Sequence record: OR805295.1
Reading direction: 5' to 3' (one strand)
DNA: 64,000 bases
Position 1 is the stretch's first letter, and every line of letters begins with the position of its first letter. The notes beneath the pieces were generated by a model that did no database searches, was not told the DNA's origin, and worked only from the letters and a program-made list of their open reading frames with translations. Of this stretch, positions 1 through 44,037 are shown piece after piece. Position numbers and translations under genes: made by a program.

Positions 1-2
1 TC

Positions 3-215
3 GAGGATGCAGTAAAGTATGCCGTTAGCAACGGCGAACAAGGGCAACCCCTCCCCGCGCCGGCGGCGCAGACCGATGCCCCGGCAACGGCAGAAGCGCA
101 AGCAGAAGCCCCGGCGGCGCAGACCGAGGATGCGCCGGAGACCCCGGCGGCCGAAGCTAAGCCCGCCCGCAAAGGCGGCAGCAAAGGCAGCAGCAAAGGC
201 GGCAGCAAAAAGTAA
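3..215 (+). CDS. 3' end of early protein with Ala/Pro/Glu linker and Lys/Gly/Ser-rich basic tail (5' truncated by window)
   Basis: Frame 3 is open from base 3 to TAA 213-215 and reads EDAVKYAVSNGEQGQPLPAPAAQTDAP...AKPARKGGSKGSSKGGSKK. It ends just before a terminator. More plausible than the listed 19..225 ORF. Confidence 0.75.
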   Translation, partial: EDAVKYAVSNGEQGQPLPAPAAQTDAPATAEAQAEAPAAQTEDAPETPAAEAKPARKGGSKGSSKGGSKK

Positions 216-228
216 GCGCTGCTAACAC

Positions 229-257
229 AGGAAAGGGGCAACTGCCCCTTTCCTTTT
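229..257 (+). terminator. Rho-independent terminator, family AGGAAAGGGGCAACTGCCCCTTTCCTTTT
   Basis: GC stem plus T-run; near-identical copies at 945-976 and 2231-2259. Confidence 0.85.
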
Positions 258-315
258 ATGTCCTAGTTGTAAATGCAAATTAATCTTATTTGCATTTGCA
301 CAAGTCAATCTCCTG

Positions 316-343
316 TTGCATTACTGCGGCAAGATGTTAGTAT
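316..343 (+). promoter_or_regulatory. sigma70-type early promoter
   Basis: TTGCAT-16-TAGTAT, then RBS AGGAG before 384. Confidence 0.7.
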
Positions 344-383
344 GTGCTTGGCAGTAACACATAACTAGCAGGAGCAACAGACA

Positions 384-632
384 ATGGCTAAAGTATTGCA
401 TGTTAACAGCATCGGCAACATCGCCGAAGTGTTTACATCTGTAGACCTCGATAGCGCCTTGTTGCACGCAATCAAGCGCTGTGCAATGATGGGCAAGGTT
501 AATGTTGTTGGTCCCAACGCTCCTGTGTTTGCTAGCCACTACGACGCACTGACAGCGTACGACGTGCAGTGGCGCCTTGTTCCACCAGGCTGCGGCGTTA
601 CTTTGTACGTCATCGCCGAGGACAACAACTAA
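384..632 (+). CDS. hypothetical early protein, 82 aa
   Basis: Promoter and GCAGGAG RBS upstream. Confidence 0.85.
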   Translation: MAKVLHVNSIGNIAEVFTSVDLDSALLHAIKRCAMMGKVNVVGPNAPVFASHYDALTAYDVQWRLVPPGCGVTLYVIAEDNN

Positions 633-643
633 GGAGAGACACA

Positions 644-946
644 ATGAATCTCGTACATCTGTGGATCAACGGGCGTGTTGTGACTGCCCGCAAGGTTGTA
701 AGTAAACACACTGTCCGCAATCCGAACAGTCCGATTGATATCGAGACTATCGACGTTGTTCGACTGCGTCTGCCCCGTGGTGTTCGTGCTAGCAGTTGGG
801 CACTCCGTAAGGCAGTGTACCAGCTCATGGAGCAAAGCTGTAGCTGCTCGAGTGACTGTTGTGGACACTGGTTCGGCGGCGCACGCAAGATCTACATTAA
901 AGGCAGAGACGTCAGTGTCGTTGCCGGGTACCAGCGCAATTACTAA
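644..946 (+). CDS. hypothetical early protein with Cys cluster (CSCSSDCCGH), 100 aa
   Basis: AAGGAG RBS at 631 points to ATG 644 rather than 569; terminator follows. Confidence 0.8.
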   Translation: MNLVHLWINGRVVTARKVVSKHTVRNPNSPIDIETIDVVRLRLPRGVRASSWALRKAVYQLMEQSCSCSSDCCGHWFGGARKIYIKGRDVSVVAGYQRNY

Positions 947-976
947 AGGAAAGGGGCAGTTGCCCCCTTTCCTTTT
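945..976 (+). terminator. Rho-independent terminator
   Basis: AAAGGAAAGGGGCAGTTGCCCCCTTTCCTTTT. Confidence 0.85.
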
Positions 977-1089
977 ATCCATTAATGTGCAAACGCGAAT
1001 TATTCTTATTTGCACAGGACAGTGAGATGCAAACAAGAGGCATTCTTGATGCAGTCGGGTGATAAGAATTGTTCACAAAAAGAAAAAGC

Positions 1090-1117
1090 TTGCGTTATGC
1101 TACACAGGTGCTAGTAT
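1090..1117 (+). promoter_or_regulatory. sigma70-type early promoter
   Basis: TTGCGT-16-TAGTAT with extended TG. Confidence 0.7.
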
Positions 1118-1159
1118 GTGTATTGCAGTACCTATAAACATTAATAGCAGGATAAGAAA

Positions 1160-1480
1160 ATGGTTGACTTTAAAGGTTTTAACTGGGACGCACTAGTCCC
1201 GGAGGACAACGTTTCCACAGTTTCCATTAAAAATCACTACGAGGAACTCCTACAAAGTTTTGTTGACAACGGCATAGACTATGTGTTAGTCCGGCTGTCC
1301 CAGGAACTGCCGCACTACGAGGATTCAGATTATCCCTGCTACAAATTGGTTGACAAGTATGCAGGATGGATAGTAGGCTGGGACTACTACGGATTTGTTG
1401 TGGAACGCATGGACACGCACCTTTTCTTTGACAACAGCACTGCAAAAGGTGTAATGGACTTCCTGGAAGCTAACGGCTAG
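1160..1480 (+). CDS. hypothetical acidic early protein, 106 aa
   Basis: Own promoter, RBS AGCAGGA and terminator. Confidence 0.85.
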   Translation: MVDFKGFNWDALVPEDNVSTVSIKNHYEELLQSFVDNGIDYVLVRLSQELPHYEDSDYPCYKLVDKYAGWIVGWDYYGFVVERMDTHLFFDNSTAKGVMDFLEANG

Positions 1481-1483
1481 CAC

Positions 1484-1514
1484 AAAAAGGAAGGGGCGCA
1501 AGCCCTTTTCTTTT
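1484..1514 (+). terminator. Rho-independent terminator
   Basis: AAAAAGGAAGGGGCGCAAGCCCTTTTCTTTT. Confidence 0.8.
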
Positions 1515-1670
1515 GTCTGCAATTTCTGTGCAAATAAGAACTATTACAGTTGTGGTAAAAGCACAATGCAAATAAGACGCATTCTTGATTAGGCCTGATA
1601 ATAAGTTCTTATTAACAACAAAGAAACTGAATAAGAATAATTCTGAAAAAATAACCCTGCGGCGTAACAC

Positions 1671-1699
1671 AAAGGGCTTGCAAATTGCAAGCCCTTTTT
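1671..1699. terminator. terminator-like hairpin with no gene in front
   Basis: AAAGGGCTTGCA-AAT-TGCAAGCCCTTT, 12-bp stem. Confidence 0.7.
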
Positions 1700-1706
1700 A
1701 ATATGC

Positions 1707-1782
1707 ATTTGTTCTAAGATTAGTTCTTATTTGCAATGATAATATTCCCGCCTTACAAATAAGAACTAATCTTAGAACAAAT
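1707..1782. repeat. perfect 27-bp inverted repeat with 22-bp spacer
   Basis: ATTTGTTCTAAGATTAGTTCTTATTTG (1707-1733) is the exact reverse complement of 1756-1782. Confidence 0.95.
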
Positions 1783-1863
1783 ATTCACTTGATTTTTCTC
1801 CCAATATAGTGTATGTCTATATTAGATAAGATTAAGTCTTGTTTGCTTGTTACACTTTATATG

Positions 1864-1892
1864 TTGCAATGCTAAGGCAATGACAATATTAT
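1864..1892 (+). promoter_or_regulatory. sigma70-type early promoter
   Basis: TTGCAA-17-TATTAT. Confidence 0.65.
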
Positions 1893-1923
1893 ATGTACAG
1901 CAACACAAAACAGGAGATATAAC

Positions 1924-2229
1924 ATGTCAGCAGAATTGAAGCGGTTGTTAGAGATTTTTCCAACCTTTAAATCATTCATTTATGCTGAAGGGGCATATGG
2001 CATTGATGTTTGGAAGGCTACGGGTAGTGTTACTTTGGAACAGGTATTCAATGCTGTTAATGCAGGTAATGCAGAATGGCAATGTAAAGGTGATCCAACA
2101 TGCAGCCTGGAACAAAACAGCATGTATATTTTCATTACTATTCAGGAACCAGACTACACAGGAATGGTTGACATTGATGTTTGTGTAAAGATTACTAACG
2201 GTAATGAAGTAAGTTATCAAATAGCATAA
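1924..2229 (+). CDS. hypothetical early protein, 101 aa
   Basis: CAGGAG RBS, promoter and terminator. Confidence 0.85.
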   Translation: MSAELKRLLEIFPTFKSFIYAEGAYGIDVWKATGSVTLEQVFNAVNAGNAEWQCKGDPTCSLEQNSMYIFITIQEPDYTGMVDIDVCVKITNGNEVSYQIA

Positions 2230-2230
2230 T

Positions 2231-2259
2231 AAAGGAAAGGGGCAACTGCCCTTTTTCTT
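2231..2259 (+). terminator. Rho-independent terminator
   Basis: AAAGGAAAGGGGCAACTGCCCTTTTTC. Confidence 0.8.
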
Positions 2260-2308
2260 ATGACCATTGATGCAAACTATTCTTATTTGCACATCAAAAA
2301 AATATCTA

Positions 2309-2336
2309 TTGAATTCTATTAATATGATGCTATTAT
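2309..2336 (+). promoter_or_regulatory. sigma70-type early promoter
   Basis: TTGAAT-16-TATTAT with extended TG. Confidence 0.6.
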
Positions 2337-2365
2337 ATATAGTGTAATTAACTCGGAGTAAAGTT

Positions 2366-2653
2366 ATGCAACCTCTAAAGCAATTGCCACAAAACTACGC
2401 AATAATCACTCCAACTAGTGTTACTAATTTTAACTGCACCTTTTCTCAAGCCTATTGCAGAATAAAAGCAGAATGCAAAAACGTTTTCTGTTGGGTTCGT
2501 TGGGGTGACCACGGCGTTGCAATGAAGCGCCGAATTGATCCACCGTATGTAGTGTATCGAAACAACGGACGACAACGAAAAGTAGTTCTTGTAAACGTAG
2601 ACAAAGCCCCTGTTAATTGGCAAGACGAACTTAAACAACTATACAAATGGTAA
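2366..2653 (+). CDS. hypothetical early protein, 95 aa
   Basis: GGAG RBS, terminator downstream. Confidence 0.8.
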   Translation: MQPLKQLPQNYAIITPTSVTNFNCTFSQAYCRIKAECKNVFCWVRWGDHGVAMKRRIDPPYVVYRNNGRQRKVVLVNVDKAPVNWQDELKQLYKW

Positions 2654-2655
2654 TT

Positions 2656-2684
2656 AAGAAAAGGGCTATTATAGCCCTTTTCTT
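2656..2684. terminator. Rho-independent terminator
   Basis: AAGAAAAGGGCTA-TTA-TAGCCCTTTTCTT. Confidence 0.85.
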
Positions 2685-2834
2685 ATGACCATTGATGCAA
2701 ACTATTCTTATTTGCACGATCCCGCACTTATAACACAAGTATGTTACAAAAGCAAGAATAAAATTAACTTGACACCTATATGTAGAATATAGCACAATGT
2801 GTTTATAAATTATATTACTACAGGAGCGTTAACC

Positions 2835-3206
2835 ATGTTCAAATGCAAATTGTTTGTAGTAGATCCTGTTTATAACAACCTTTGCTACACTCAACAAATA
2901 TGGCTCGAAAGTGACGTAAATGTGTGTAGCCAAATAAAGCGTATTATTTCTGACGTAGAATTGGCATGCGCAAATAGGATAGTAAATAATCCTCATAGTC
3001 CACTATGCGTTAAATCAGCAGCATTAAAAATGGTTATGGACGGGCGCATTGACATCGAACTCAAAGATGTCAATAGTTACGTTGATCAATATAAAGACAT
3101 TCTTCCTAGCACAAATATTTTGGGTGTTTTTAAACCGACGTTTTTATCTAACTGGAAAGAAGAGTGTGAACTTTATTTCCTTAGTTGCGTTGAAAAAGAC
3201 AATTAA
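2835..3206 (+). CDS. hypothetical protein
   Basis: CAGGAG RBS at 2821 favours ATG 2835 over 2799. Confidence 0.75.
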   Translation: MFKCKLFVVDPVYNNLCYTQQIWLESDVNVCSQIKRIISDVELACANRIVNNPHSPLCVKSAALKMVMDGRIDIELKDVNSYVDQYKDILPSTNILGVFKPTFLSNWKEECELYFLSCVEKDN

Positions 3207-3212
3207 TATAAT

Positions 3213-3500
3213 ATGGAAGATGATTTAAAAAATATTGTTTCGAAGACTATCTTATCTAATAAAATTAAGATAGTCTCTTTACGTACTGTAGTAAAAACTC
3301 AGTATAAAAGAGTAGACTTCCATTATAAGATAGAATGTGAAAATAGTTCTACAAAACGTAATTTGGTATTTGCCCGTATATGCAAACCATTAGAACACAC
3401 ATTAGGTTCAAAACTTGTTTATGTAGATATTGTGCCTATCAAGTTTAAGAAAGATGAAATGCCATCTACTATTCTATCGGTAAGTGTAATGACTAGTTGA
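3213..3500 (+). CDS. hypothetical protein, 95 aa
   Basis: Follows previous gene by 6 nt. Confidence 0.7.
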   Translation: MEDDLKNIVSKTILSNKIKIVSLRTVVKTQYKRVDFHYKIECENSSTKRNLVFARICKPLEHTLGSKLVYVDIVPIKFKKDEMPSTILSVSVMTS

Positions 3501-3592
3501 TATTTGGATTTGATATTTGGAAATATAATAGTAATTCTTATTTGCAATTATAATAAATTCTTGTTTACTTTTAAAATAAAAGCAAATTCTAG

Positions 3593-3621
3593 TTGCATAG
3601 CTAGCGGCAATGTGCTAGTAT
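3593..3621 (+). promoter_or_regulatory. sigma70-type early promoter
   Basis: TTGCAT-17-TAGTAT with extended TG. Confidence 0.75.
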
Positions 3622-3651
3622 ATTAAAAAATAAAGACAGGAGTGTTATTAC

Positions 3652-3834
3652 ATGCAAACCAAAGCAACCGAGTTGGCAGTAGGCGATGTTGTTTTCTACA
3701 ATGGCATGAAAATGACTATCCAGAAAATTTCTAAAGGTCGGTGTGCAATAGATATTACACTAGTAAATACTTTGGCTAAACTCACATCTTATGTGACAGT
3801 CGACTATGACGAAGAATTTGAAGAAGTATTATAA
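3652..3834 (+). CDS. small hypothetical protein, 60 aa, possibly an SH3/KOW-like beta barrel
   Basis: RBS CAGGAG; pattern ELAVGDVVFYNG. Confidence 0.75.
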   Translation: MQTKATELAVGDVVFYNGMKMTIQKISKGRCAIDITLVNTLAKLTSYVTVDYDEEFEEVL

Positions 3835-3850
3835 TGCAGAAATTATAGTC

Positions 3851-3881
3851 ATAAGAAAAGGGGCATTGCCCCTTTTCTTAT
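3851..3881. terminator. bidirectional terminator between convergent genes
   Basis: ATAAGAAAAGGGGCA-T-TGCCCCTTTTCTTAT. Confidence 0.85.
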
Positions 3882-4117
3882 AGTCCCAACAAATGCTTGC
3901 CACTTTTGACTTGCATCATACGTACTTTCTTTTTGCGCATTTGCGTTCTTACGTTCAGGCTGTTGGGACCTTTGAAGCTATACAGTATTTCAGTAGTCCC
4001 GTCTTCATAGTTGCGTACTACATTTGCAACAATTTGACTACCTTCCTGGAACGCTTCGATAAACACGCAGTAATTGAAATTTTCCTTGTTAGCGTTATGT
4101 GCGCGTAGTTGCATCAT
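3878..4117 (-). CDS. hypothetical early protein, 79 aa
   Basis: Minus-strand GCAGGAG RBS and promoter; ends in shared terminator. Confidence 0.8.
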   Translation of the reverse strand: MMQLRAHNANKENFNYCVFIEAFQEGSQIVANVVRNYEDGTTEILYSFKGPNSLNVRTQMRKKKVRMMQVKSGKHLLGL

Positions 4118-4155
4118 TTTCTGTTACTCCTGCGTTGTTTTGCTTTGTTATGTGT

Positions 4156-4183
4156 AGTATACGCTATGCGTGTGCTAATGCAA
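4156..4183 (-). promoter_or_regulatory. sigma70-type early promoter
   Basis: TTGCAT-16-TATACT on minus strand. Confidence 0.75.
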
Positions 4184-4415
4184 GAATTTTCTTCCATTTT
4201 CTTTCAAATAAAATGTTATTAGCATCTATTCTGTTATAACATTTTCTACGACTTCATGTTTTGCAAATAAGAATTAATCGCATTTGCATTCCTACCTATA
4301 TGCCTAAATTTTAGGCAGCCTGGGTGATTGTCTCCCCCGCCCTATTACTGGTCTCTGTATAAAGATAATAGCATATTTGTATCTGCATGCAAGCATTTTT
4401 TGTAGAATTTTCCTC

Positions 4416-4444
4416 TTGACATTCCTTGCTGTAGGCTACATTAT
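4416..4444 (+). promoter_or_regulatory. sigma70-type early promoter
   Basis: TTGACA-17-CATTAT. Confidence 0.65.
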
Positions 4445-4470
4445 GCACACACAGAGCAGGAGATACCATT

Positions 4471-4851
4471 ATGGCACTCATAGCATTAGTAGCAACTGCA
4501 TATGACAAAGAAGGCGATAAGTTCGACTATGTTCGATATCTTAAAGCTCATATCAATTTTGTTTCTGCTCAAGATCAACTGAAAGAATGGATCAAAAACA
4601 AAATTGATGCAAGTATAGCAGAAGTTAAAATCGGTTTACGTGCAGAAATCGAAGTATTGGCCTATTTGGGAAACTATATAAGCCATAGTCAACGGATTAT
4701 TAGTCCCGCCGGGATCATCATGTACATTGTTCTTGATGAGAAGTATGTTAACGAACTTCACGGTCAAATTTCTAATGCAATTGGTTGTGAAGAAAAGAAA
4801 CATGTAATAAAGAAAGAAGAAAACGTCACTTATATTGATTTTAAAAAATAA
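4471..4851 (+). CDS. hypothetical early protein, 126 aa
   Basis: AGCAGGAG RBS and promoter. Confidence 0.85.
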   Translation: MALIALVATAYDKEGDKFDYVRYLKAHINFVSAQDQLKEWIKNKIDASIAEVKIGLRAEIEVLAYLGNYISHSQRIISPAGIIMYIVLDEKYVNELHGQISNAIGCEEKKHVIKKEENVTYIDFKK

Positions 4852-4852
4852 C

Positions 4853-4881
4853 TTGCATTAGCTGTAATGTATATGTATTAT
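4853..4881 (+). promoter_or_regulatory. sigma70-type promoter with no ORF downstream
   Basis: TTGCAT-17-TATTAT with extended TG; predicted start near A4888. Confidence 0.7.
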
Positions 4882-4887
4882 GTACTC

Positions 4888-5044
4888 AAGTTTGCAGCAA
4901 GACGTATTAATTTGTTTTGCTGTTAGTTGTAACTCCTGCTACCAAGTATGTGTTGAGCTAATGCTCCTGACTTGGTTCTTGGTACACTGGTTTGGGTGTA
5001 CCGTTCTTGAGCTGCAAAGGGCTTGCCCGGCGCAGCTTTTTTTT
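4888..5044 (+). ncRNA. candidate structured small RNA, about 155 nt
   Basis: Own promoter; stems 4894-4903/4914-4923, 4942-4947/4970-4975, 4981-4987/4996-5002 and 5010-5015/5032-5037, then 8 T; no credible ORF seen. Confidence 0.65.
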
Positions 5045-5060
5045 GACTAATATTATTCAT

Positions 5061-5090
5061 TTGACAAAAAATAATAATTAAAAATATAAT
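5061..5090 (+). promoter_or_regulatory. sigma70-type promoter
   Basis: TTGACA-18-TATAAT. Confidence 0.7.
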
Positions 5091-5124
5091 AGCTTAGTGT
5101 ATAACTTCCCATATTAGGCTAATT

Positions 5125-5496
5125 ATGAAATTTGTTATTGCTGCTATTGCATTGTCTTTGTCCACACTAGTTTCTGCAGAATCTATTACTGAAGTTGAGA
5201 TAACTAAAGAAACATGCCTTACACTTCTGGAATTATCTAAGATTCATGTTGATATGGTAGTAAATGAACATATGAATGCAATACAAATTGCATCTCATAT
5301 GGATATTGTATCTAATTTATATAAGAATAATAATAGTAAATGGCTTGCGTTCTTGCAGGCTCAAGCAAATATTTCAAAATTAATTGATAACGTATATGAG
5401 TTTTCATCTACTGAAGAAAGAAAGATTATCCCTCTAGCCATATTTAACGGTTGTATGGAAAGAGTTGGTAATACTTTTGAAATATATAAGAAATAA
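5125..5496 (+). CDS. exported protein with Sec signal peptide, 123 aa
   Basis: MKFVIAAIALSLSTLVSA/ES: basic N-terminus, hydrophobic core, VSA cleavage site. Confidence 0.85.
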   Translation: MKFVIAAIALSLSTLVSAESITEVEITKETCLTLLELSKIHVDMVVNEHMNAIQIASHMDIVSNLYKNNNSKWLAFLQAQANISKLIDNVYEFSSTEERKIIPLAIFNGCMERVGNTFEIYKK

Positions 5497-5497
5497 T

Positions 5498-5809
5498 ATG
5501 TATGTATATGTAGTCCATAGAATAGTCAATACAGGCGTTGAGACTAATATTTGCGATATAGAACGTTACGTTACAATTAACGACGTCGGTGCTATATCAA
5601 AGTTTCTTAATTTTAAAGAACATATAGCAGCAAACCCAAACTTATATATACGATTAATTACTACTGGATTTAATACTAAAAAGAACATATTAGAATTAAA
5701 TTTATCCAAAAAAGAATATGTAGTATCAGGTTTTAGAGTTACATCAACTAATATAAATGAATGTATTGAATATTACCTGTGTAGAAGGATATTTAAGTTA
5801 TATGATTGA
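5498..5809 (+). CDS. hypothetical protein
   Basis: ATG 1 nt after previous stop, in the frame of listed ORF 5465..5809. Confidence 0.65.
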   Translation: MYVYVVHRIVNTGVETNICDIERYVTINDVGAISKFLNFKEHIAANPNLYIRLITTGFNTKKNILELNLSKKEYVVSGFRVTSTNINECIEYYLCRRIFKLYD

Positions 5810-5927
5810 ATTTATATTAAAATCCCTTTTATTAACTTCAGTTGTCAGTGTTGGCATACTACTGATATTCATTATTATTTCATTGTTAATGTTTGGCTTA
5901 GCACCGATAGTTCCATTCCTTATTTAA
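5802..5927 (+). CDS. 41-aa hydrophobic membrane peptide (below ORF-track cutoff)
   Basis: MIEFILKSLLLTSVVSVGILLIFIIISLLMFGLAPIVPFLI; overlaps previous stop. Confidence 0.65.
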   Translation: MIEFILKSLLLTSVVSVGILLIFIIISLLMFGLAPIVPFLI

Positions 5928-6141
5928 TTTTAATTATTTGCAAGCAAATGCAAATGCGAATAATTCTTATTATCCAGCAGGCTACTGTACCTAATCTTCG
6001 TTAGATAAAATCTATTAGAATCTACAAAGTCCATTAAAACGTTCAATTGTACATGGTGGCCAGATCTGCATATACTACACACATGAAGCAAGCAAACAGC
6101 GCTTCATAAACAAACCCAAATACAGCTAGGAGTTCCAAATC

Positions 6142-6603
6142 ATGTCCAAAGCAACCGTTACCGTCGAGCAATCCGCAATCAAACTGGTTCGCCGCAACCT
6201 GGAAGGGCACCGGCAAGCCCTGTTGCTGAACGGCGTCGAAGTAGGCAGCAGCGAAGCGTTCTACAAGACCAAAACCCAGCGCACCTGGTCGGCGAAGATC
6301 GACGCCAACATCAACGGCAAGGACATCGTCCTCGAACAGAAAGGCGTGTTCAGCGCGATCCGGATCGCCCGGGCGATGGAACAAGCAATCCTGTTCATCC
6401 TGACCGACGGCAAAGAAGGCGCCGAGATGCCGGCCAGCACGCTGAGCAAGGAAGAGCAAGCCCACAACCTGGTCAAGGCAGTAGTCCAGGTCGCCGACCA
6501 TGCAGTTCAGTCCGGCGGCGCCGGCAACGGCGAAACCGAGGCAGCAGCCCCGGCGAAGAAAGGCAGCTCGAAGAAGCGCAAAGAAGCCCAGCCGGAAGCA
6601 TAA
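6142..6603 (+). CDS. GC-rich early protein with acidic/basic C-terminal tail, 153 aa
   Basis: AGGAG RBS, TATACT -10 at 6071, terminator downstream, GC3-rich codons. Confidence 0.9.
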   Translation: MSKATVTVEQSAIKLVRRNLEGHRQALLLNGVEVGSSEAFYKTKTQRTWSAKIDANINGKDIVLEQKGVFSAIRIARAMEQAILFILTDGKEGAEMPASTLSKEEQAHNLVKAVVQVADHAVQSGGAGNGETEAAAPAKKGSSKKRKEAQPEA

Positions 6604-6616
6604 TCCGGACTACACC

Positions 6617-6642
6617 GAGAAAGCACCGAAAGGTGCTTTCTC
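6617..6642 (+). terminator. terminator-like hairpin
   Basis: GAGAAAGCACC-GAAA-GGTGCTTTCTC, 11-bp stem with GNRA loop. Confidence 0.75.
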
Positions 6643-6759
6643 TATGACAGTTAATAGCAAATATTCTTATTTGCATCTAACCTGAAATAATAATAACTCT
6701 TATTTACAAATCATACTGAATACTGTATTTTACACATTAAACATTGTAGGTAATATAAA

Positions 6760-7248
6760 TTGAATATATTTGTGACTGACACAAATCCTTATGTATGTGC
6801 CAAACATCATTGTGATATTCATCTAAGAAAGATGATAGTAGAAACAGCACAATTGTTAAGCACCACTCATTATATAATAAACGGATATACTCCTGCATAT
6901 AAACCTACTCATAAAAATCACCCATGTACCGTTTGGATTAGAGAAAGTTCATATAACTATAAATGGACTTATGAACTTCTTACAAGTCTTATAAATGAAT
7001 TTGAATATAGATTTGACAAACAACATGCAACTAAAATTCACCTTTCGTCATTAAAAACTATACCAAAACTCCCTAATATAGAAAGAACAGAGTTTGTCTT
7101 AGTTATGCCAGACGAATTTAAAACAGGTAATGTAACACATTCATATCAGTTATATTTAAATAACAAATTTAAAGAATGGGCATCGAGATCTAACAGACCC
7201 ATTTATGCTACATATACAAAGACACCTAAACCATATTTTATTAGTTGA
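6760..7248 (+). CDS. denV: pyrimidine dimer DNA glycosylase / endonuclease V-like family protein
   Basis: MNIF...KMIVETAQLLST and YKPTHKNHPCTVW motifs typical of the phage DenV-like family; TTG start. Confidence 0.8.
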   Translation: MNIFVTDTNPYVCAKHHCDIHLRKMIVETAQLLSTTHYIINGYTPAYKPTHKNHPCTVWIRESSYNYKWTYELLTSLINEFEYRFDKQHATKIHLSSLKTIPKLPNIERTEFVLVMPDEFKTGNVTHSYQLYLNNKFKEWASRSNRPIYATYTKTPKPYFIS

Positions 7249-7320
7249 AAAATAATAAAAATGATTGACACGTACATAAGATCATATTATGCTGTATAAA
7301 ACAGCAAGGAGTAGATATAC

Positions 7321-7554
7321 ATGTACCGCAAACTGAATACAAATCCACGCCCAATGCCAAAAACAAAGGCAATTCCAACTAAATTTGTCATTCAGTACAC
7401 TGCACGGAATAAAGCAACAGAAAGTTTGTTCAAAAAAAGAACTATTACATTACATGCGTTTGGGCGTCTCGATGCACAGACACTCCTATCAAAACATATA
7501 CGAAAAAATAATTTGGAATTAGGTGTAATTATTGATTTCGGTGAAACAGTTTAG
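7321..7554 (+). CDS. basic hypothetical early protein, 77 aa
   Basis: TTGACA-17-TATGCT at 7265-7293, AAGGAG RBS and terminator. Confidence 0.8.
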   Translation: MYRKLNTNPRPMPKTKAIPTKFVIQYTARNKATESLFKKRTITLHAFGRLDAQTLLSKHIRKNNLELGVIIDFGETV

Positions 7555-7563
7555 TTAGTGACT

Positions 7564-7594
7564 AAAGAAAGGGGATTAATTCCCCTTTCTTTTT
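7564..7594. terminator. Rho-independent terminator
   Basis: AAAGAAAGGGGA-TTAAT-TCCCCTTTCTTTTT. Confidence 0.85.
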
Positions 7595-7819
7595 ATTAAG
7601 TCAAATACAAATGCAAATACAAATTATTCTTATTTGCACAGATCAGACCGGCAATCCCAATAACATTACTAACTTAGATGAAATGGCTTACTACAATGAA
7701 CCCTGAATACTGAAAAGTGCCTAAGAAGTAATTCCAGTTGTATCTAAAACACTATGTGTTATTATACATATAGTGTTTTTATTTCTTATAATTATATTCA
7801 ATAATAATGGTAAAAATAT

Positions 7820-8143
7820 ATGATTGAAGTAATTAAATGCATTATATGTAATGAATCACCCCGTCCGGGCGCATTTGCAGCATTTATTACTCAAATGCGT
7901 CAAGTAGTAAAACCTCATGCAACTATAACTAGTTGGAATATTCTGCCCGGCATTAATGATGATCCAACTAGTTATATTCATGCATTCAGTATAAAATCAA
8001 AAACAGCATACGATATTAATCAAGCGATTACCTTATTACTAATGTCATTATATAATGCTAGTGAATATAAGACTAGCTACACACCTACTTCGTTTAAAGA
8101 CTATGAATCTACAATAAAGCATTTATCTAAGATCAAACAATAA
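7820..8143 (+). CDS. hypothetical protein, 107 aa, N-terminal CxxC
   Basis: ORF track; weak RBS. Confidence 0.6.
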   Translation: MIEVIKCIICNESPRPGAFAAFITQMRQVVKPHATITSWNILPGINDDPTSYIHAFSIKSKTAYDINQAITLLLMSLYNASEYKTSYTPTSFKDYESTIKHLSKIKQ

Positions 8144-8207
8144 CCAGTTGCATATTTACAAATATACATGTATGCTAAAACATATACACAATCATGAGTA
8201 CATTATC

Positions 8208-8363
8208 ATGACAAAAGAAATTGCTTTTACTGAAGGAGTAAAAGCAGGCACTCAAATAAAAGAAGGCAAAGCTATCCTAACTGACTTCTTTCGATATTTC
8301 AATTCCTTACCAACTAATATGAGAACTTCTTTTATCATCGGTATCAAAACCGGTAGAAACTAA
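8208..8363 (+). CDS. small hypothetical protein (start uncertain, 8148 or 8208)
   Basis: In frame with listed ORF 8148..8363. Confidence 0.5.
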   Translation: MTKEIAFTEGVKAGTQIKEGKAILTDFFRYFNSLPTNMRTSFIIGIKTGRN

Positions 8364-8544
8364 TAAGCATATTAATTTTCATATTTTGGTAGACAAGGGT
8401 ACTCACTGGATGCATACTGTACACATACAGAACATACGGAGTACAAAGGGATGGATGCGCGTAGTCTGCTTAGCCTTATCGAAGACCTTCCTATAGCTGT
8501 CACGTCTGTTTTGACACCCTCTACCTCGCTTGCAAATAAAAAGG

Positions 8545-8573
8545 TTGACGCAGACTAGCATCGGACACATAAT
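8545..8573 (+). promoter_or_regulatory. sigma70-type early promoter
   Basis: TTGACG-17-CATAAT. Confidence 0.75.
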
Positions 8574-8611
8574 AACTATAACACAACGAAACAGCCCCGG
8601 AGGGCAAGCAA

Positions 8612-8917
8612 ATGGAAACCATCGGCCAAATCATCCTGCAACAACTGGGCGGCAATAAATTCATCGCAATGACTGGGGCTAAGGATTTCGTCCGCTCCGA
8701 TGCCGGCAAGTGGCTGCAATTCAAACTGCCTTCCAACTTCGCCAAAAATAAAATCAATTGCGTGAAAATCACCCTGACCCCTGCGGATTTGTACGATGTC
8801 GAATATCTGTACATTCGCGGGATGAACGTCAAAGAAGTGTCGGTTTCCCGTAGCATTTATGCCGACATGCTGCAAAAGGATTTCACCGAAAACACCGGGC
8901 TTGATACTCATCTGTAA
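8612..8917 (+). CDS. conserved phage hypothetical protein (ILQQLGGNKFIAMTGAK type), 101 aa
   Basis: GGAGG RBS; I recognise the N-terminal motif from many phages but know no function for it. Confidence 0.9.
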   Translation: METIGQIILQQLGGNKFIAMTGAKDFVRSDAGKWLQFKLPSNFAKNKINCVKITLTPADLYDVEYLYIRGMNVKEVSVSRSIYADMLQKDFTENTGLDTHL

Positions 8918-8932
8918 AAGTTTCGAAAAGGG

Positions 8933-8961
8933 TTGCATCATATTCCGACATCCCTTATACT
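8933..8961 (+). promoter_or_regulatory. sigma70-type early promoter
   Basis: TTGCAT-17-TATACT. Confidence 0.8.
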
Positions 8962-9000
8962 ATGCCCATACACAACGAAACAGACCCGGAGGGCAAAACT

Positions 9001-9150
9001 ATGTGCAACATCCAATGCATGAACAGCAAAGCCGGCGAGTCCTACGCATGGATTTGGAGCGATAGCGATAGCGATATCTGCTACGAAGTTATCTTCCGGC
9101 ATGGCCAAGTCCTCACCCAGGTTTGGCTCGGCTATGATATTGTAGCCTAA
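9001..9150 (+). CDS. 49-aa acidic early protein
   Basis: GGAGG RBS at 8988 gives ATG 9001; terminator follows. Confidence 0.75.
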   Translation: MCNIQCMNSKAGESYAWIWSDSDSDICYEVIFRHGQVLTQVWLGYDIVA

Positions 9151-9158
9151 CACCAACT

Positions 9159-9183
9159 AAAGCCCCGTCCCAGGCGGGGCTTT
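9159..9183. terminator. terminator-like hairpin
   Basis: AAAGCCCCG...CGGGGCTTT. Confidence 0.75.
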
Positions 9184-9199
9184 ACCGAAGGAAAAGATC

Positions 9200-9409
9200 A
9201 TGATCGAACAACTGAAAGACATGCTCGTAGCGCAACGCATGCGCATGAACCAACTCGAAAAACTGCGCTACACCGGACGGGTCGCTAGCGAGTTGCATGC
9301 CCACGCCAGGGAATTGTGTGAAGCCTTGGAACTGGCAATTGCAAATGCCCAGTGCCTGGAAATGCGCAAGCCCGAAGAAGCCACCCTGCACGCCCTGTTC
9401 GCACAATAA
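9200..9409 (+). CDS. hypothetical helical protein, 69 aa
   Basis: AAGGA RBS, GC3-rich codons. Confidence 0.75.
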   Translation: MIEQLKDMLVAQRMRMNQLEKLRYTGRVASELHAHARELCEALELAIANAQCLEMRKPEEATLHALFAQ

Positions 9410-9442
9410 CCCACCACGCACAACCCGACAAGGAAACCAACC

Positions 9443-9934
9443 ATGAGCACCACAATCCCCGATACGATTCATCCGAGTGACCTTCCCGAAATCGGCCAGC
9501 CTCTGGCTGATGGAACCTTCTTTGCCCGCCAATGGCTCAATGGCAAGGAATACGCATACGTCGATCTCGGCAAAAGCGCCGAGTTCACTGAAGAATGGGG
9601 CGAGTATGGGCAGGATGTGAACGGCGCCGCCAGCTACCGAGACGGAGCTTCGAACACGATCGCTATGGCTGAAGCTGGCAGCCCGATTGCCAAGCAAGCT
9701 ATGGAGATCGGAGAAGGCGTATTCATTCCTTCTGTTCTGGAACTGGCTCTTCTGTTCTCTGCCAAGCAAGCAGACGAGCTGTCTGGTTTCGCAGATCGCT
9801 GGTACTGGTCGAGTTCGCAGTACTCCGCCTGCGGCGCCTTCCGCATGCACTTCGGCGACGGCGAGGCTAGTGTCGCCATCAAGAGCAGCGCCTGGTTGGT
9901 CCGCCCCGTTCGCAAGATTCTCATCCTTCAGTAA
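9443..9934 (+). CDS. DUF1566 / Lcl C-terminal domain (C-type-lectin-like) protein
   Basis: GxxNT..M, FIPSxxEL, WYWSSSQYS and terminal VRPVRK motifs match the Pseudomonas-prophage DUF1566 family. Confidence 0.85.
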   Translation: MSTTIPDTIHPSDLPEIGQPLADGTFFARQWLNGKEYAYVDLGKSAEFTEEWGEYGQDVNGAASYRDGASNTIAMAEAGSPIAKQAMEIGEGVFIPSVLELALLFSAKQADELSGFADRWYWSSSQYSACGAFRMHFGDGEASVAIKSSAWLVRPVRKILILQ

Positions 9935-10011
9935 TATAGCCCCGGAGATAACACGATGAACCTGCACCTCTCCAAGCATTGTCTGCGCCAACGCGGGACC
10001 AAGGAACAATC

Positions 10012-10260
10012 ATGAGCATTGCAAGCTACCTCTTGTTGTCCACCATTGTCTTCAACAACAACACCTACGCTCGTTCGACGACAGTGGACACCATTGTGGT
10101 TCGTGACCTTAGCAAGGAAGACTGCGAGGCGCTCAAGCGTGAGCGCGAAGCAGTTGTGAAGAACATCCGGGCAAGGAACTTCGGTAGCTCTGGCGATACG
10201 AGTAGTATCACTGTGGGCTTTTCCAAACATAGCTGCACAAAGATGGAGGGTACGAAATAA
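10012..10260 (+). CDS. hypothetical protein with hydrophobic N-terminus
   Basis: AAGGA RBS before ATG 10012. Confidence 0.7.
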   Translation: MSIASYLLLSTIVFNNNTYARSTTVDTIVVRDLSKEDCEALKREREAVVKNIRARNFGSSGDTSSITVGFSKHSCTKMEGTK

Positions 10261-10333
10261 CTCAACTGGCCACGGCGAGCAAACATTGCCTGGCAGGTGC
10301 TAGCTGAACGCCTGGCGGAACAATAAATAAAAG

Positions 10334-10362
10334 TTGACGTAGCCGAGCGAAGGGCGCATAAT
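10334..10362 (+). promoter_or_regulatory. sigma70-type early promoter
   Basis: TTGACG-17-CATAAT, same type as 8545. Confidence 0.75.
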
Positions 10363-10401
10363 AATTACAACACAACACAGCAAGCCCCGGAGGGCGCAAC
10401 C

Positions 10402-10602
10402 ATGACCCAGATCGTAGATGTCAAGCAAATTGCAATTGATGCAAACCGTCGCCCGGCCTACAATGCGGTCATGGTGCGCTGGTTGATGCAGGAAGCTGAA
10501 TTGCACCGTAGCTGCGGACGCACCGCTACCCTGTTCTGCATCGTTCGCAACCGCCCTGACGGCACACAGCGCCAGCTTGTGCAGCTTGTGGCTAGCGAGT
10601 AA
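10402..10602 (+). CDS. hypothetical early protein, 66 aa
   Basis: GGAGG RBS and promoter. Confidence 0.8.
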   Translation: MTQIVDVKQIAIDANRRPAYNAVMVRWLMQEAELHRSCGRTATLFCIVRNRPDGTQRQLVQLVASE

Positions 10603-10632
10603 CCTCAATCACCCTACGCCCAGGAGGCCGTC

Positions 10633-10797
10633 ATGAATGCTGCACTGGCCAGACTTCAAAACGAACGTTGCATGTTACTTCGCCGGATGCTTTGCAGCAA
10701 ATGGCACGGATTCTGTTTTGCAGGTCACCCCTGGGCAGAACAAGCCCGCAATCTGCACGACGAATCCAAGTGCATCCGAGAACATTACAGTAAGTAA
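10633..10797 (+). CDS. 54-aa Cys/His-rich protein (not in ORF track)
   Basis: CAGGAGG RBS; MNAALARLQNERCMLLRRMLCSKWHGFCFAGHPWAEQARNLHDESKCIREHYSK. The listed 10637..10936 ORF begins in the wrong frame. Confidence 0.75.
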   Translation: MNAALARLQNERCMLLRRMLCSKWHGFCFAGHPWAEQARNLHDESKCIREHYSK

Positions 10798-10831
10798 TCC
10801 AATCCCACTGGATCTTACTGAGGATAAGATA

Positions 10832-10936
10832 ATGACCTACGCAGAACTAATAAAGAAACTACATAACATAGAAGCTAGTCATTATCTTTCCAATAATGAA
10901 GTTAATTTTCAAAACACAGGCAAGCAGGAGAATTAA
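10832..10936 (+). CDS. 34-aa peptide
   Basis: GAGGA RBS before ATG 10832. Confidence 0.5.
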   Translation: MTYAELIKKLHNIEASHYLSNNEVNFQNTGKQEN

Positions 10937-10937
10937 A

Positions 10938-11234
10938 ATGAATTGTGAACATTTTTTCCTCAGTGCAGTAAAAGAACTTCTGTCCCTGTACCACATTAAG
11001 AGTACTATTCAACAGTCTTCTGATAACCTCGAAGAATTGGTAGTAGTTATTACCGATACTGCTTTTGGTACTATCAGATATGTTGGAAATAACACTGGAT
11101 CGGTTATGTGTTATACTATGGGCGGTAATTACCCGTTGTATGATACTGAGTGTTATTCCAACCGAACTATGATAGATTGTGTTATGTTGATATCAGTTTG
11201 GTATTCAATGTTTCCGGCATTTGATAATAAGTAA
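10938..11234 (+). CDS. hypothetical protein
   Basis: AGCAGGAG RBS favours ATG 10938. Confidence 0.75.
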   Translation: MNCEHFFLSAVKELLSLYHIKSTIQQSSDNLEELVVVITDTAFGTIRYVGNNTGSVMCYTMGGNYPLYDTECYSNRTMIDCVMLISVWYSMFPAFDNK

Positions 11235-11490
11235 TATAATGGTTGTTCTATATAGTGTATGATGTTAGTTGTATACTATATAGAATAATTCTATTAACTG
11301 GGAGGGATTAATAAAAATATTTTCTTGACAATAGCAGGTATAGGATAATTCTATTATACTGAAAATTGTTATAGAAAAATATAGTTGACAAATTTTGAAA
11401 GTGATGAATTCCAACACCGGGTGGCTGTAAGCTGAGACGGTTAACATTCGGTGGCTGGTGGATTGTTACGCGGGTAGATTTTGAAATTCA

Positions 11491-43194: not shown

Positions 43195-44037
43195 ATGAAT
43201 ACAAAAATTGTAGTTAATTATATTAATAATAAAGAAATGTTAAAGGAAATACATCGTAGTAAAAATTCATTCTGCGAATATATTTCCCCAGAGTATAAAG
43301 ATTACGATATTATCTTTACTTCAAAAGAAGACTGTCTGAAACAAGAAAATATAAACGCAGCAATACTTAAACGAGCAGAGCGTTTAACTCAAGTACAGAT
43401 AGATGAATATGCATTAAGAACAAATACTAGTTCTAAAAAAGCAAAAGCATCTATAACCCAAGTAGATCCTGCAACAATAAATAAACATGATGTTGTTTTT
43501 CGTGTTATAACATACGAACATATTCCAGAAGATCATGATAGGAAAAAGACAAAAAAATCAATTAAAGACTATCATGTTAAGTTAAATTTTACTCCTTTTA
43601 AACATTTTATTATAGACGAAAATAATAACTTAGTAGAAGTAGGCAGAAGTCACAGCAAAAAAGGAGAGTTTTGCTTAACTGGAGGATCTATATCAGATAG
43701 ATTAGCAAAAATGTTTATGTTGTTAATTGACAAATTCGGTCAAAAAAGCAACTGGCGTGGATATTCATATCTAGATGAAATGAAGGGACAAGCTTTACTT
43801 CAGTTAGCGTCTATGGGGTTGCAATTCGACGAACATTTAAGCGATAATCCCTTTGCATATTACACTTCGTCTATAAACAATTCTTTTACTAGGGTATTCA
43901 ACATAGAAAAACGTAATCAAATAATCAGGGACGATTTATTACAAAATATGGGACAAAATCCTAGCCTTACTAGACAATTAGAACACGATGAGCAAATTCG
44001 GTTGCTCAGAGAATTAAATGATTCTAAAGATGATTAA
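43195..44037 (+). CDS. gp55: late transcription sigma factor, T4 gp55-like
   Basis: NYINNKEML; NWRGYSYLDEM; FD...SDNPFAYYT...NSF...EK; adjacent to gp47/46 as in T4. Confidence 0.9.
   Translation: MNTKIVVNYINNKEMLKEIHRSKNSFCEYISPEYKDYDIIFTSKEDCLKQENINAAILKRAERLTQVQIDEYALRTNTSSKKAKASITQVDPATINKHDVVFRVITYEHIPEDHDRKKTKKSIKDYHVKLNFTPFKHFIIDENNNLVEVGRSHSKKGEFCLTGGSISDRLAKMFMLLIDKFGQKSNWRGYSYLDEMKGQALLQLASMGLQFDEHLSDNPFAYYTSSINNSFTRVFNIEKRNQIIRDDLLQNMGQNPSLTRQLEHDEQIRLLRELNDSKDD

Follow-up and report, generated by a model that had tools for sequence, protein, structure and literature searches.

Repeats resembling bacterial Fur operators accompany early gene cassettes of the Pseudomonas jumbo phage Paride

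A repeat array in the early region of Paride

The window, the whole 64,000-nt stretch of sequence record OR805295.1 that was analyzed, is part of Pseudomonas phage Paride, a PA5oct-like jumbo phage with a 287-kb genome. Window positions 1-11,460 are the last part of a region that in PA5oct makes up the 39-kb terminal repeat. Early genes are carried in this long terminal repeat, and the repeats of the array described here, which lies inside it, are doubled (PMC7318152). The PA5oct gp52 protein, an anti-END nuclease inhibitor, also maps within the array. The features recognized in the window are as follows (window coordinates unless stated otherwise).

229..259, plus strand: intrinsic terminator of the module family AAAGGGGC..GCCCCTTT followed by T (repeat families D3 and D5); other copies of this module family at 951-977, 1489-1515, 2236-2262, 2660-2686, 3850-3882 and 7569-7596
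269..300, plus strand: candidate Fur-type box 1, GTAAAT GCAAAT TA ATCTTA TTTGCA plus one additional TTTGCA hexamer, 10 nt past the terminator T-tract and 21 nt ahead of the -35 at 316
316..343, plus strand: box-associated early promoter, TTGCAT-N16-TAGTAT preceded by TG; others like it at 1090-1117, 2309-2336 and 3593-3621
989..1014, plus strand: candidate Fur-type box; 995-1014 is the exact 20-mer GCGAATTATTCTTATTTGCA of bacterial iron-uptake loci
1027..1054, unstranded: degenerate box TGCAAACAAGAGGCATTCTTGATGCA between the box at 989 and the promoter at 1090 (repeat D8)
1529..1592, minus strand: two boxes, half-sites 1529-1540 and 1567-1578, directly past the terminator at 1489-1515
1592..1650, unstranded: two weak sites, namely TTCTTATTAACA (1606) and, near 1628, the palindrome GAATAAGAATAATTCTGAA, the site scored below as 1630
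1707..1782, unstranded: two inverted boxes forming inverted repeat I3 (30-nt arms, 97% complementary, 16-nt spacer)
2266..2291, plus strand: box that opens a Paride-specific cassette, within a 43-nt direct repeat (D2) shared with 2675-2717
2243..2703 (Paride 188,243-188,703), plus strand: gene cassette found only in Paride, with ORF 2366-2653 and a duplicated terminator-tail plus box module at both ends
2691..2716, plus strand: box; homology to Ettore, Callisto and PA5oct restarts exactly at its half-site
3521..3569, plus strand: box with a perfect half-site (3535-3546) and a proximal, weak copy ATTCTTGTTTAC; the promoter at 3593 (TTGCAT-N-TGCTAGTAT) follows
4262..4287, minus strand: box in the intergenic region between divergent genes, upstream of gene 3878-4117 (minus strand)
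5941..5973, plus strand: hexamer array GCAAAT GCAAAT GCGAAT A ATTCTT ATTATC, whose best E. coli match is the fhuE promoter
6650..6708, plus strand: box (half-site 6664-6675) and weak second box CTCTTATTTACA (6697-6708)
7602..7638, plus strand: final box of the array, with four CAAAT(A/G) hexamers upstream

The full site is a palindromic hexamer array of 25-26 bp, [GCAAAT][GCGAAT]TA[TTCTTA][TTTGCA]. Each cassette is ordered as an intrinsic terminator, 4-12 nt, the box, 14-21 nt, a sigma-70 promoter, a 5′ UTR, and a small early gene. The genes flanking the modules gave no informative Pfam match. The box-associated promoters combine a weak -35 (mostly TTGCAT) with an extended -10, although the association of boxes with weak -35 hexamers is only a trend (p = 0.26). 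The gap of 14-21 nt between box and -35 is kept in Paride despite unrelated spacer sequences, and it places the box centre at approximately -63 to -71, away from the core promoter. An overlap with the -35 or -10, as in classical repression, was found neither in Paride nor in its relatives. A previous interpretation made from the window alone, here called the sequence-only reading, had correctly placed most boxes upstream of the -35 rather than on it; its description of the sites as lying just after a terminator applies to seven in the window (269, 989, 1529, 2266, 2691, 6650, and 7602). Some intergenic regions contain tandem clusters of three to five boxes, and those at Paride 166,977-167,096, Paride 185,282-185,400 and window 1,529-1,780 lack one-to-one pairing with promoters.

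The array is non-random and restricted to the early region of the terminal-repeat equivalent. With at most one mismatch, TTCTTATTTGC occurs 15 times in the window, where 3.0 ± 1.8 are expected, and none of 100 shuffles reached 15; the 10-mer CTTATTTGCA is found 11 times in window 1-8,000 and never in the other 56 kb. In the whole 287-kb genome there are 22 copies of the 9-mer CTTATTTGC, 19 of them at 166,978-193,629, and all 10 perfect copies of the 12-mer half-site TTCTTATTTGCA fall within Paride 185,303-193,627. Allowing two mismatches, the 26.8-kb array stretch contains 43 half-sites, compared with 6.2 (maximum 9) in shuffles of that stretch that preserved local composition; allowing one, it contains 24, and the other 260 kb contain eight. 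The sequence-only reading counted about 19 palindromes in the first 7.7 kb. That number is reproduced for half-sites (TTCTTATTTGCA, ≤2 mismatches, window 1-7,700), but several of these are two arms of one palindrome. Its scores against AATGAGAAT-n-ATTCTCATT were likewise recovered (16/18 at 5953, 15/18 at 992 and 4266, 14/18 at 272, 1630, 6686, and 7616), as were the 6-bp hexamer runs at 5944 and 7602. The array does not begin at 269, however, and its upstream limit is Paride 166,977, 19 kb beyond the window start. The first 8.5 kb of the repeat is free of boxes.

Resemblance to bacterial Fur operators

Identification of the repeats as Fur-type boxes is supported by the recurrence of the phage 20-mer GCGAATTAWTCTTATTTGCA exactly beside bacterial iron-uptake genes. 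Exact copies are present in 17 metagenome contigs and 15 genomes of bacterial species, 32 unrelated contigs in all, whose GC contents span 31-71% and which show no similarity to the phage; an iron-acquisition gene adjoins the 20-mer at 21 of these 32 loci. The neighbors are TonB-dependent receptors (eight loci), TonB (two), a cupredoxin/P19-like protein plus an FTR1 iron permease (eight), an iron-type periplasmic binding protein (one), and Bfd (two). No Pseudomonas species genome was among those with an exact match. The best E. coli match is the promoter of the Fur-regulated gene fhuE, which contains GCAAAT hexamer runs. These matches bear out the proposal of the sequence-only reading that the sites are of the Fur-box type.

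The architecture of the sites is consistent with this identification. Overlapping sites spaced by 6 bp, or extension by 6-bp hexamers, are a hallmark of Fur site clusters (PMC2189734), and a central AANNNTT is another feature of Fur sites, the recognition of which is conserved between Fur of E. coli and Fur of P. aeruginosa (PMC2189734, PMC6922518, PMC4506495). The phage boxes have inverted hexamers around a central AATTATT and, at 5944 and 7602, hexamer runs with sites 6 bp apart. Like proteobacterial Fur boxes, they are AT-rich with fixed G/C positions. By contrast, comparison with the E. coli Fur 19-mer consensus GATAATGATAATCATTATC proved too blunt for the phage sites, which match at 10-14 of 19 positions (mean 11.5, against 10.8 for an AT-matched background of the Paride genome); even the idealized palindrome reaches only 13/19, and the sites as a group fall short of the rule of at least 14/19 for a Fur box (PMC6922518). 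That rule is insensitive: applied to a Pseudomonas Fur regulon, it recovers a single box (PMC6922518). Counting mismatches in Fur boxes has also been criticized (PMC2189734).

The phage boxes differ from the bacterial ones in position and number. Bacterial copies lie on the core promoter at a distance of 24-76 nt to the start codon, whereas phage copies lie 14-21 nt upstream of the -35, and bacteria have one box per locus where the phage has dozens within 27 kb, partly as tandem clusters. The phage DNA may also be modified: in PA5oct, a modified G in GA or GG context has been reported (preprint 10.1101/2025.03.31.646159), the box has both of its inner-hexamer Gs in such a GA context, and Arg57 of Fur reads the O6/N7 of a conserved G (PMC4506495). 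Virion DNA may therefore bind Fur poorly.

Conservation and cassette exchange among relatives

Conservation of the motif in related phages, which the sequence-only reading had named as a check, extends to four divergent metagenomic relatives (L132, L133, L134, and L136) with a GC content of 47-52% and little or no DNA similarity to Paride. Eight perfect half-sites occur in 7.2 kb of L132. The gap between box and -35 in the divergent relatives is 15-21 nt, the same as in Paride; the constancy of this distance may be due in part to common descent of whole modules.

Related phages gain, lose, and swap early gene cassettes at the short homologies that boxes and modules provide. Where Paride, Ettore, Callisto, and PA5oct differ by a cassette indel, it ends at the edge of a box or module, and in the box-dense 9 kb five of eight breakpoints are within 5 nt of a half-site. 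An insertion in Ettore and Callisto is flanked by the duplicated 186,231-186,343, and the junction of a deletion in Callisto (187,015-187,718) is inside a box. Breakpoints in the 174-180 kb part of the Paride region do not coincide with boxes. In integrons, attC cassettes are promoterless and have a conserved GTTRRRY core and a neighboring tyrosine recombinase. We rejected attC-type sites as an explanation for the Paride modules because the cassettes have their own promoters, the core differs from GTTRRRY, and no integrase is annotated in the genome.

The modules resemble the PeSL (promoter-early stem-loop) cassettes of T4-type phages (PMC2839356, PMC4122927). In both, a G-run/C-run stem-loop terminator adjoins an early promoter of sigma-70 type whose upstream part is AT-rich, copies of the module surround small ORFans in an early region that is plastic (D2, D3, and D5 in Paride), and indels between close relatives end in the repeats. 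In Paride, however, a sharply conserved 25-bp host-operator palindrome replaces the generic AT-rich upstream region, and the modules belong to the terminal repeat of a jumbo phage that is not of the T4 type.

Possible roles of the boxes in infection

We consider it somewhat better than even (probability about 0.55) that these repeats are true operators of the Fur type, which the phage lineage has incorporated into the regulatory cassettes of its early genes. Most likely, the phage would engage host Fur for early-gene control, for Fur soak-up, or for both. Dimers of iron-loaded host Fur would occupy the near-optimal boxes and extend from them along the 6-bp runs of hexamers, most likely giving a subclass of early promoters an iron-status input. 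At 5 min in iron-replete LB, the box-bearing units rank among those with the highest transcription, and the box centre lies off the core promoter; therefore Fur is probably not a simple occluding repressor. Possible routes would be upstream activation or relief of MvaT/MvaU silencing of AT-rich DNA. For E. coli ftnA and in Neisseria meningitidis, Fur is described as an upstream activator or anti-silencer in work cited in PMC6922518 and PMC2189734, and in ftnA-type activation, upstream-bound Fur can raise transcription by displacing an H-NS-type silencer. Most E. coli Fur clusters overlap promoters, and cases of direct activation from upstream are uncommon (PMC2189734). With rising genome copy number, the many boxes (doubled in the terminal repeat) would in addition draw Fur away from host promoters, as in FURTA, where many copies of a good box lower free Fur.

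The sequence-only reading favored a decoy, in which the boxes mainly sequester Fur so that host iron uptake and PrrF small RNAs are derepressed for phage replication. Closeness to promoters would then be incidental, with intergenic DNA the sole free space and modules spreading with the cassettes. Boxes that are near-optimal, identical to bacterial operators over an exact 20-mer, numerous, positioned off the core promoter, partly clustered without one-to-one promoter pairing, and doubled in the terminal repeat (PMC7318152) speak for such a decoy, and iron-dependent enzymes, e.g., ribonucleotide reductase and QueE, are encoded by the phage. A pure sponge, however, has no need for a constrained gap between box and -35 in Paride and distant relatives. 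Thousands of Fur molecules have been reported in E. coli, against a few dozen boxes per incoming genome. Titration would therefore be relevant only after replication, and the suggestion that early DNA soaks up Fur does not hold for a single incoming genome. In its main text, the PA5oct RNA-seq paper makes no mention of an iron-regulon change, nor does it highlight induction of that regulon. Since the distance between box and promoter is constrained across unrelated spacers and divergent relatives, cis-regulatory use, which the sequence-only reading had offered as its second option (tuning early genes to iron status), is at least as indicated as a decoy. The Fur-type identity and off-promoter position from that reading are supported. 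We regard sequestration as the main role as unlikely, and are equally doubtful of its full form, a purpose-built, replication-amplified DNA sponge that strips the host of its essential iron repressor and so forces iron import and iron-sparing for the phage.

It is less probable still that the repeats are operators of a phage protein or a non-Fur host protein that switches this early promoter class, with the likeness to Fur boxes a coincidence of AT-rich hexamer palindromes. Phages and plasmids commonly have dispersed sets of operators for a single regulator (P1 C1 and RK2 KorB, for example), and both the weak match to the classical Fur consensus and the lack of an exact 20-mer in the Pseudomonas genomes would fit; against this, identity at 20/20 positions beside iron genes in six independent gene contexts makes coincidence very unlikely, Pfam recognizes no DNA-binding or Fur domain in any of 61 proteins of the terminal-repeat region, and the late sigma factor is the sole annotated transcription regulator in the genome. 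Breakpoints exactly at half-site edges and the duplication of whole terminator-box-promoter modules around cassettes could also be explained by pure recombination linkers, bound by no regulator and kept only for cassette shuffling through PeSL-type exchange or a site-specific recombinase. Linkers require no particular sequence, yet the box equals a bacterial iron operator and is kept in relatives of very different GC content; moreover, no integrase or other site-specific recombinase is annotated, and breakpoints are off the boxes at 174-180 kb, so that this explanation appears highly improbable. A role in staged injection or DNA entry has been proposed for the first-step-transfer region of T5. 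Such signals would suit sites inside a long terminal repeat with early genes (PMC7318152), but the sites are spread over 27 kb, are tied to individual promoters rather than to a single boundary, and are lacking in the first 8.5 kb of the repeat, and we give this possibility hardly any weight.

Fur-type operators in early cassettes would resemble other cases in which phage genes are wired to a host nutrient or stress regulator. These include the Fur-controlled stx1 promoter of Shiga-toxin phages, PhoB and NtcA sites in cyanophages, and LexA boxes in several temperate phages. To our knowledge, in those cases particular promoters have a single site or a few, whereas Paride, a virulent jumbo phage, has an array of some 20-40 near-optimal sites throughout its early region. 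We know of no phage example of Fur titration or of Fur anti-silencing, both of which we infer for Paride.

Paride and PA5oct are phage-therapy candidates, and Paride kills dormant, antibiotic-tolerant P. aeruginosa in a manner dependent on host stress signaling (PMC10761892). As control elements of early genes, the PA5oct study described -35/-10 boxes and terminators only. The array is a concrete case of regulatory modules driving cassette exchange in an anti-defence and host-takeover region. A sponge, if true, would be the first natural viral DNA decoy array against a bacterial global regulator. If Fur sites do precede a class of early promoters, the start of infection would be linked to iron status, in which broth, stationary phase, and infected tissue are sharply different, and host iron homeostasis might be disturbed.

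The box array of the Paride early region

The window matches positions 186,001-250,000 of Pseudomonas phage Paride (OR805295.1) with 100% identity. Paride belongs to Wroclawvirus, the sole genus of Arenbergviridae, and ten more genomes on record share 96-97% identity with it over their aligning parts. The type phage PA5oct has a 39,080-bp direct terminal repeat holding 105 small genes, of which gp34 to gp105 show the top transcription at 5 min. Transcription of that repeat is almost exclusively from the plus strand and depends on the rifampicin-sensitive host RNA polymerase, and the regulatory motifs given for PA5oct are -35/-10 hexamers and terminators only (PMC7318152). Window positions 1-11,460 correspond to the right-hand end of the PA5oct terminal repeat. 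Paride 158,126-158,490 (L003 18126-18490), a tandem repeat located upstream of the window, is annotated as "CRISPR"; it lies at the position of the left boundary of the PA5oct repeat and is more likely to be a repeat of the genome end than a true CRISPR.

A sequence-only reading had described about 19 Fur-box-like palindromes at window 269-7637; its match scores were reproduced exactly, and motif counts above expectation confirm and extend the repeat that it observed. With at most one mismatch, TTCTTATTTGC is present in 15 copies in the window against 3.0 expected, and CTTATTTGCA occurs 11 times within the first 8 kb of the window and not at all in the remaining 56 kb. In the whole Paride genome there are 22 copies of the 9-mer CTTATTTGC, 19 of them at 166,978-193,629. 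The same interval contains 43 copies of the 12-mer half-site TTCTTATTTGCA with at most two mismatches, compared with 6.2 in local-composition shuffles; 19 of the 43 fall in window 1-7,700, and all ten perfect copies lie at Paride 185,303-193,627. These positions place the start of the array 19 kb upstream of the window. The array spans the highly expressed part of the terminal repeat, the first 8.5 kb of the repeat being without boxes. Scanning IMG/VR with AATTAWTCTTATTTGC returned single chance matches only, and with the 20-mer GCGAATTAWTCTTATTTGCA three matches, each a single site.

The aligned sites form a pseudo-palindrome of 25-26 bp, [GCAAAT][GCGAAT or AAGAAT]-TA-[TTCTTA][TTTGCA], with its centre 4 nt 5' of the C in CTTATTTGC and no information in the flanks. 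Fifteen of 19 exact-9-mer sites run with the direction of transcription. The typical module consists of a terminator of one family, 4-12 nt, the box, 14-21 nt, a promoter with a TTGCAT-like -35 and an extended -10 (TGnTAGTAT), a 5' UTR and the gene, a spacing that puts the box centre at about -63 to -71; across five Paride modules of this kind, the spacer sequences show no relationship to one another. No box lies within 250 nt of the promoters with consensus TTGACA/TTGACG hexamers (window 5061 and 7265; Paride 171,153). Overall, boxes are not significantly associated with weak -35 hexamers, and a generic sigma-70 scan was uninformative, with 41 matches against 36.8 expected. A MotA-type middle promoter, a -35 element and a sigma-54 promoter were each rejected as readings of the motif, there being no consistent -10 at 11-13 or 16-18 nt and no GG at -24. 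Boxes are clustered at three places:

Paride 166,977-167,096: box cluster, three palindromes 47 bp apart
Paride 185,282-185,400: box cluster, four sites
Window 1,529-1,780: box cluster, six sites including an inverted repeat with 30-nt arms

Tandem repeats of the AATGAATAAGGAAGTG type at Paride 166,800-166,980, upstream of the window, directly adjoin the triple cluster.

Likeness to Fur operators and conservation in relatives

Against the classical E. coli Fur 19-mer the boxes score 10-14/19, and scores of at least 12/19 occur at 3.5 per kb throughout the 33% GC Paride genome. A view that the boxes have no specific likeness to Fur sites, drawn from match counts against this 19-mer and the 7-1-7 core, was overturned by genomic contexts, and match counting of this kind is too blunt a method here. 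Consensus mismatch counts predict Fur sites poorly, the sites occur as clusters of overlapping sites spaced by exactly 6 bp, and the Fur models of P. aeruginosa and E. coli are highly similar (PMC2189734). For one Pseudomonas Fur regulon, the 14/19 rule detects one box only, and the invariant element is a central AANNNTT (PMC6922518). The centre of the phage box, AATTATT, fits this element.

The 20-mer GCGAATTAWTCTTATTTGCA, present in Paride at window 995-1014 and at 180,304, was found as an exact match in 17 metagenome contigs and 15 species-representative genomes in public collections. Each of these bacterial sequences has a single copy; they span 31-71% GC and show no similarity to the phage. 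A chance copy is not expected in contigs of 63-71% GC. Iron-related neighbours are present at 21 of the 32 loci and make up at least six independent gene contexts; they include TonB-dependent receptors, TonB, a cupredoxin/P19-like protein with the FTR1 iron permease, an iron-type periplasmic binding protein, and a Bfd that matches P. aeruginosa Bfd structures (E = 1e-8). Named carriers are Gamma- and Betaproteobacteria (Steroidobacteraceae, Limnohabitans, Comamonadaceae, Burkholderiales, Thioglobus and Pseudohongiella); the scan of species-representative genomes found the exact 20-mer in no Pseudomonas genome. When window 5936-5975 was compared with 28 Gb of E. coli genomes, the sole matches were 80 nt upstream of fhuE, reading GCGAATAATTTTGCATGCAAATGCAAATGCAAATGAGAAAT.

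Distant homologs of the GC-rich early protein encoded at window 6142-6600 led to metagenome contigs with divergent relatives of the early region. Four of them (L132, L133, L134 and L136), which have 47-52% GC and resemble Paride little or not at all at the DNA level, contain the same boxes in the same modules, with eight perfect half-sites over 7.2 kb in L132, and the gap from box to -35 in these divergent relatives is 15-21 nt. A further contig, L137, has the gene for the GC-rich protein and is almost without boxes; its repeated promoters read CTCCTGTTGACGCTA, and their -35 is better than the TTGCAT found in modules with boxes. In a comparison within Wroclawvirus aimed at purifying selection, the right half-site diverges by 0.7% versus about 2.9% in the flanks, a gap that mostly vanishes after allowing for sites having been chosen as perfect in Paride, and the left arm of the box by 3.55%. 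Because divergent relatives keep the boxes, and because of the iron-gene contexts in bacteria, the fhuE match and the published features of Fur sites, we conclude that the phage boxes are predicted Fur-type operators of high quality. Comparative genomics thus supports the initial description of the palindromes as Fur-box-like.

Cassette exchange and other early-region elements

Cassettes were compared between Paride and its relatives Ettore, Callisto and PA5oct. A gene found only in Paride (window 2366-2653) is flanked by two copies of a 43-nt repeat of terminator tail plus box, and an extra 765-bp cassette in Ettore and Callisto is flanked by a duplicated 112-bp terminator-box-promoter module. 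Paride 187,015-187,718 is missing from Callisto, with the junction inside a box. The box-dense 9 kb has eight breakpoints, five of them no more than 5 nt from a half-site edge and the remaining three at module terminator or promoter edges; in the 174-180 kb stretch, further upstream, box positions and breakpoints do not match. The cassettes compared here behave like the PeSL cassettes of T4-type phages (PMC2839356, PMC4122927).

Within the array, gp52 (PA5oct record L131, 15016-15573) is anti-END1, an experimentally shown inhibitor of END nucleases (preprint 10.1101/2025.03.31.646159), which puts the boxes among anti-defense genes. Window 4855-5045 (+), annotated in Paride as the 56-aa ORF Paride_0387, is a candidate small RNA of the phage: after a promoter-like TTGCAT-N17-TATTAT come about 160 nt of four hairpins, the last a GC hairpin plus T8. 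Its predicted fold has an MFE of -57 kcal/mol (z = -4.27), a value that none of 200 shuffles equaled, and it has no Rfam match. A 68-aa early protein of PA5oct (record L131, 23200-23403), which corresponds to Paride_0351 (181,065-181,271, upstream of the window), weakly matches ribosome modulation factor (Pfam RMF E = 2.5e-5, 24.7 bits vs a cutoff of 27.9), an intriguing likeness given that the phage replicates in dormant cells.

Candidate binding proteins and function of the boxes

Among 61 proteins of the terminal-repeat region, Pfam detected no DNA-binding or Fur domain, and the Paride genome annotation lists no regulator besides a gp55-like late sigma factor. The latter, Paride_0446 (window 43,195-44,037, +), is followed by SbcCD-like nuclease genes and gives the phage a T4-style late program on the host polymerase. 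Window 6760-7248 (+) is annotated as a "DNA binding protein"; its product matches pyrimidine-dimer DNA glycosylases of the T4 endonuclease V type, with Pfam Pyr_excise just under cutoff (E = 1.7e-4). Two paralogous early genes of about 54% GC, at window 19-225 (the end of Paride_0369) and 6142-6603, encode proteins with 39% identity. Both proteins combine a beta-rich N-domain with an Ala/Glu/Gln linker and end in a basic tail (KGGSK/KKRK), and a box cluster lies upstream of each gene. They belong to a small metagenome family whose members are all uncharacterized; they have no Pfam match, and an AlphaFold model (pLDDT 72; N-domain 85-90) has no PDB fold match. The negative results of this search are consistent with binding by a host protein.

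The literature search for the motif sequence found nothing relevant, and in the literature searched there is no prior description of what these boxes are predicted to form, a host iron-repressor operator array within the early-gene region of a virulent jumbo phage. PA5oct DNA is reported to have a modified G in GA/GG context, inferred to be of the 7-deaza type (preprint 10.1101/2025.03.31.646159), and Arg57 of Fur reads O6/N7 of a conserved G (PMC4506495); modification as reported for PA5oct would affect both inner-hexamer G's of the box. No iron genes are highlighted among the host changes in the main text of the PA5oct paper (PMC7318152).

The identical bacterial 20-mers lie on the core promoter, 24-76 nt from start codons, whereas the phage boxes lie upstream of the -35. 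Simple occlusion is unlikely, given this position and the strong expression of box-bearing units in LB. That the boxes are a dedicated Fur sponge or decoy, the main proposal of the sequence-only reading, is one of the two leading interpretations, though at low probability. E. coli is reported to contain thousands of Fur molecules. Against such numbers, each phage genome brings a few dozen boxes, which the terminal repeat doubles, so that titration would take effect only once genomes multiply, at which stage it is plausible. Coupling of the boxes to the adjacent promoter is indicated by their constrained distance from it, their biased orientation and their conservation in relatives. Of the functions considered, we rate as most likely, at a probability of about 0.55, promoter control coupled to Fur, titration being a by-product. 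In the examples cited in PMC6922518 and PMC2189734, ftnA and Neisseria, Fur bound upstream activates transcription or relieves H-NS-type silencing. Fur at the phage boxes may likewise relieve silencing by MvaT/MvaU, for which a phage of 33% GC in a host of 66% GC would be an obvious target.
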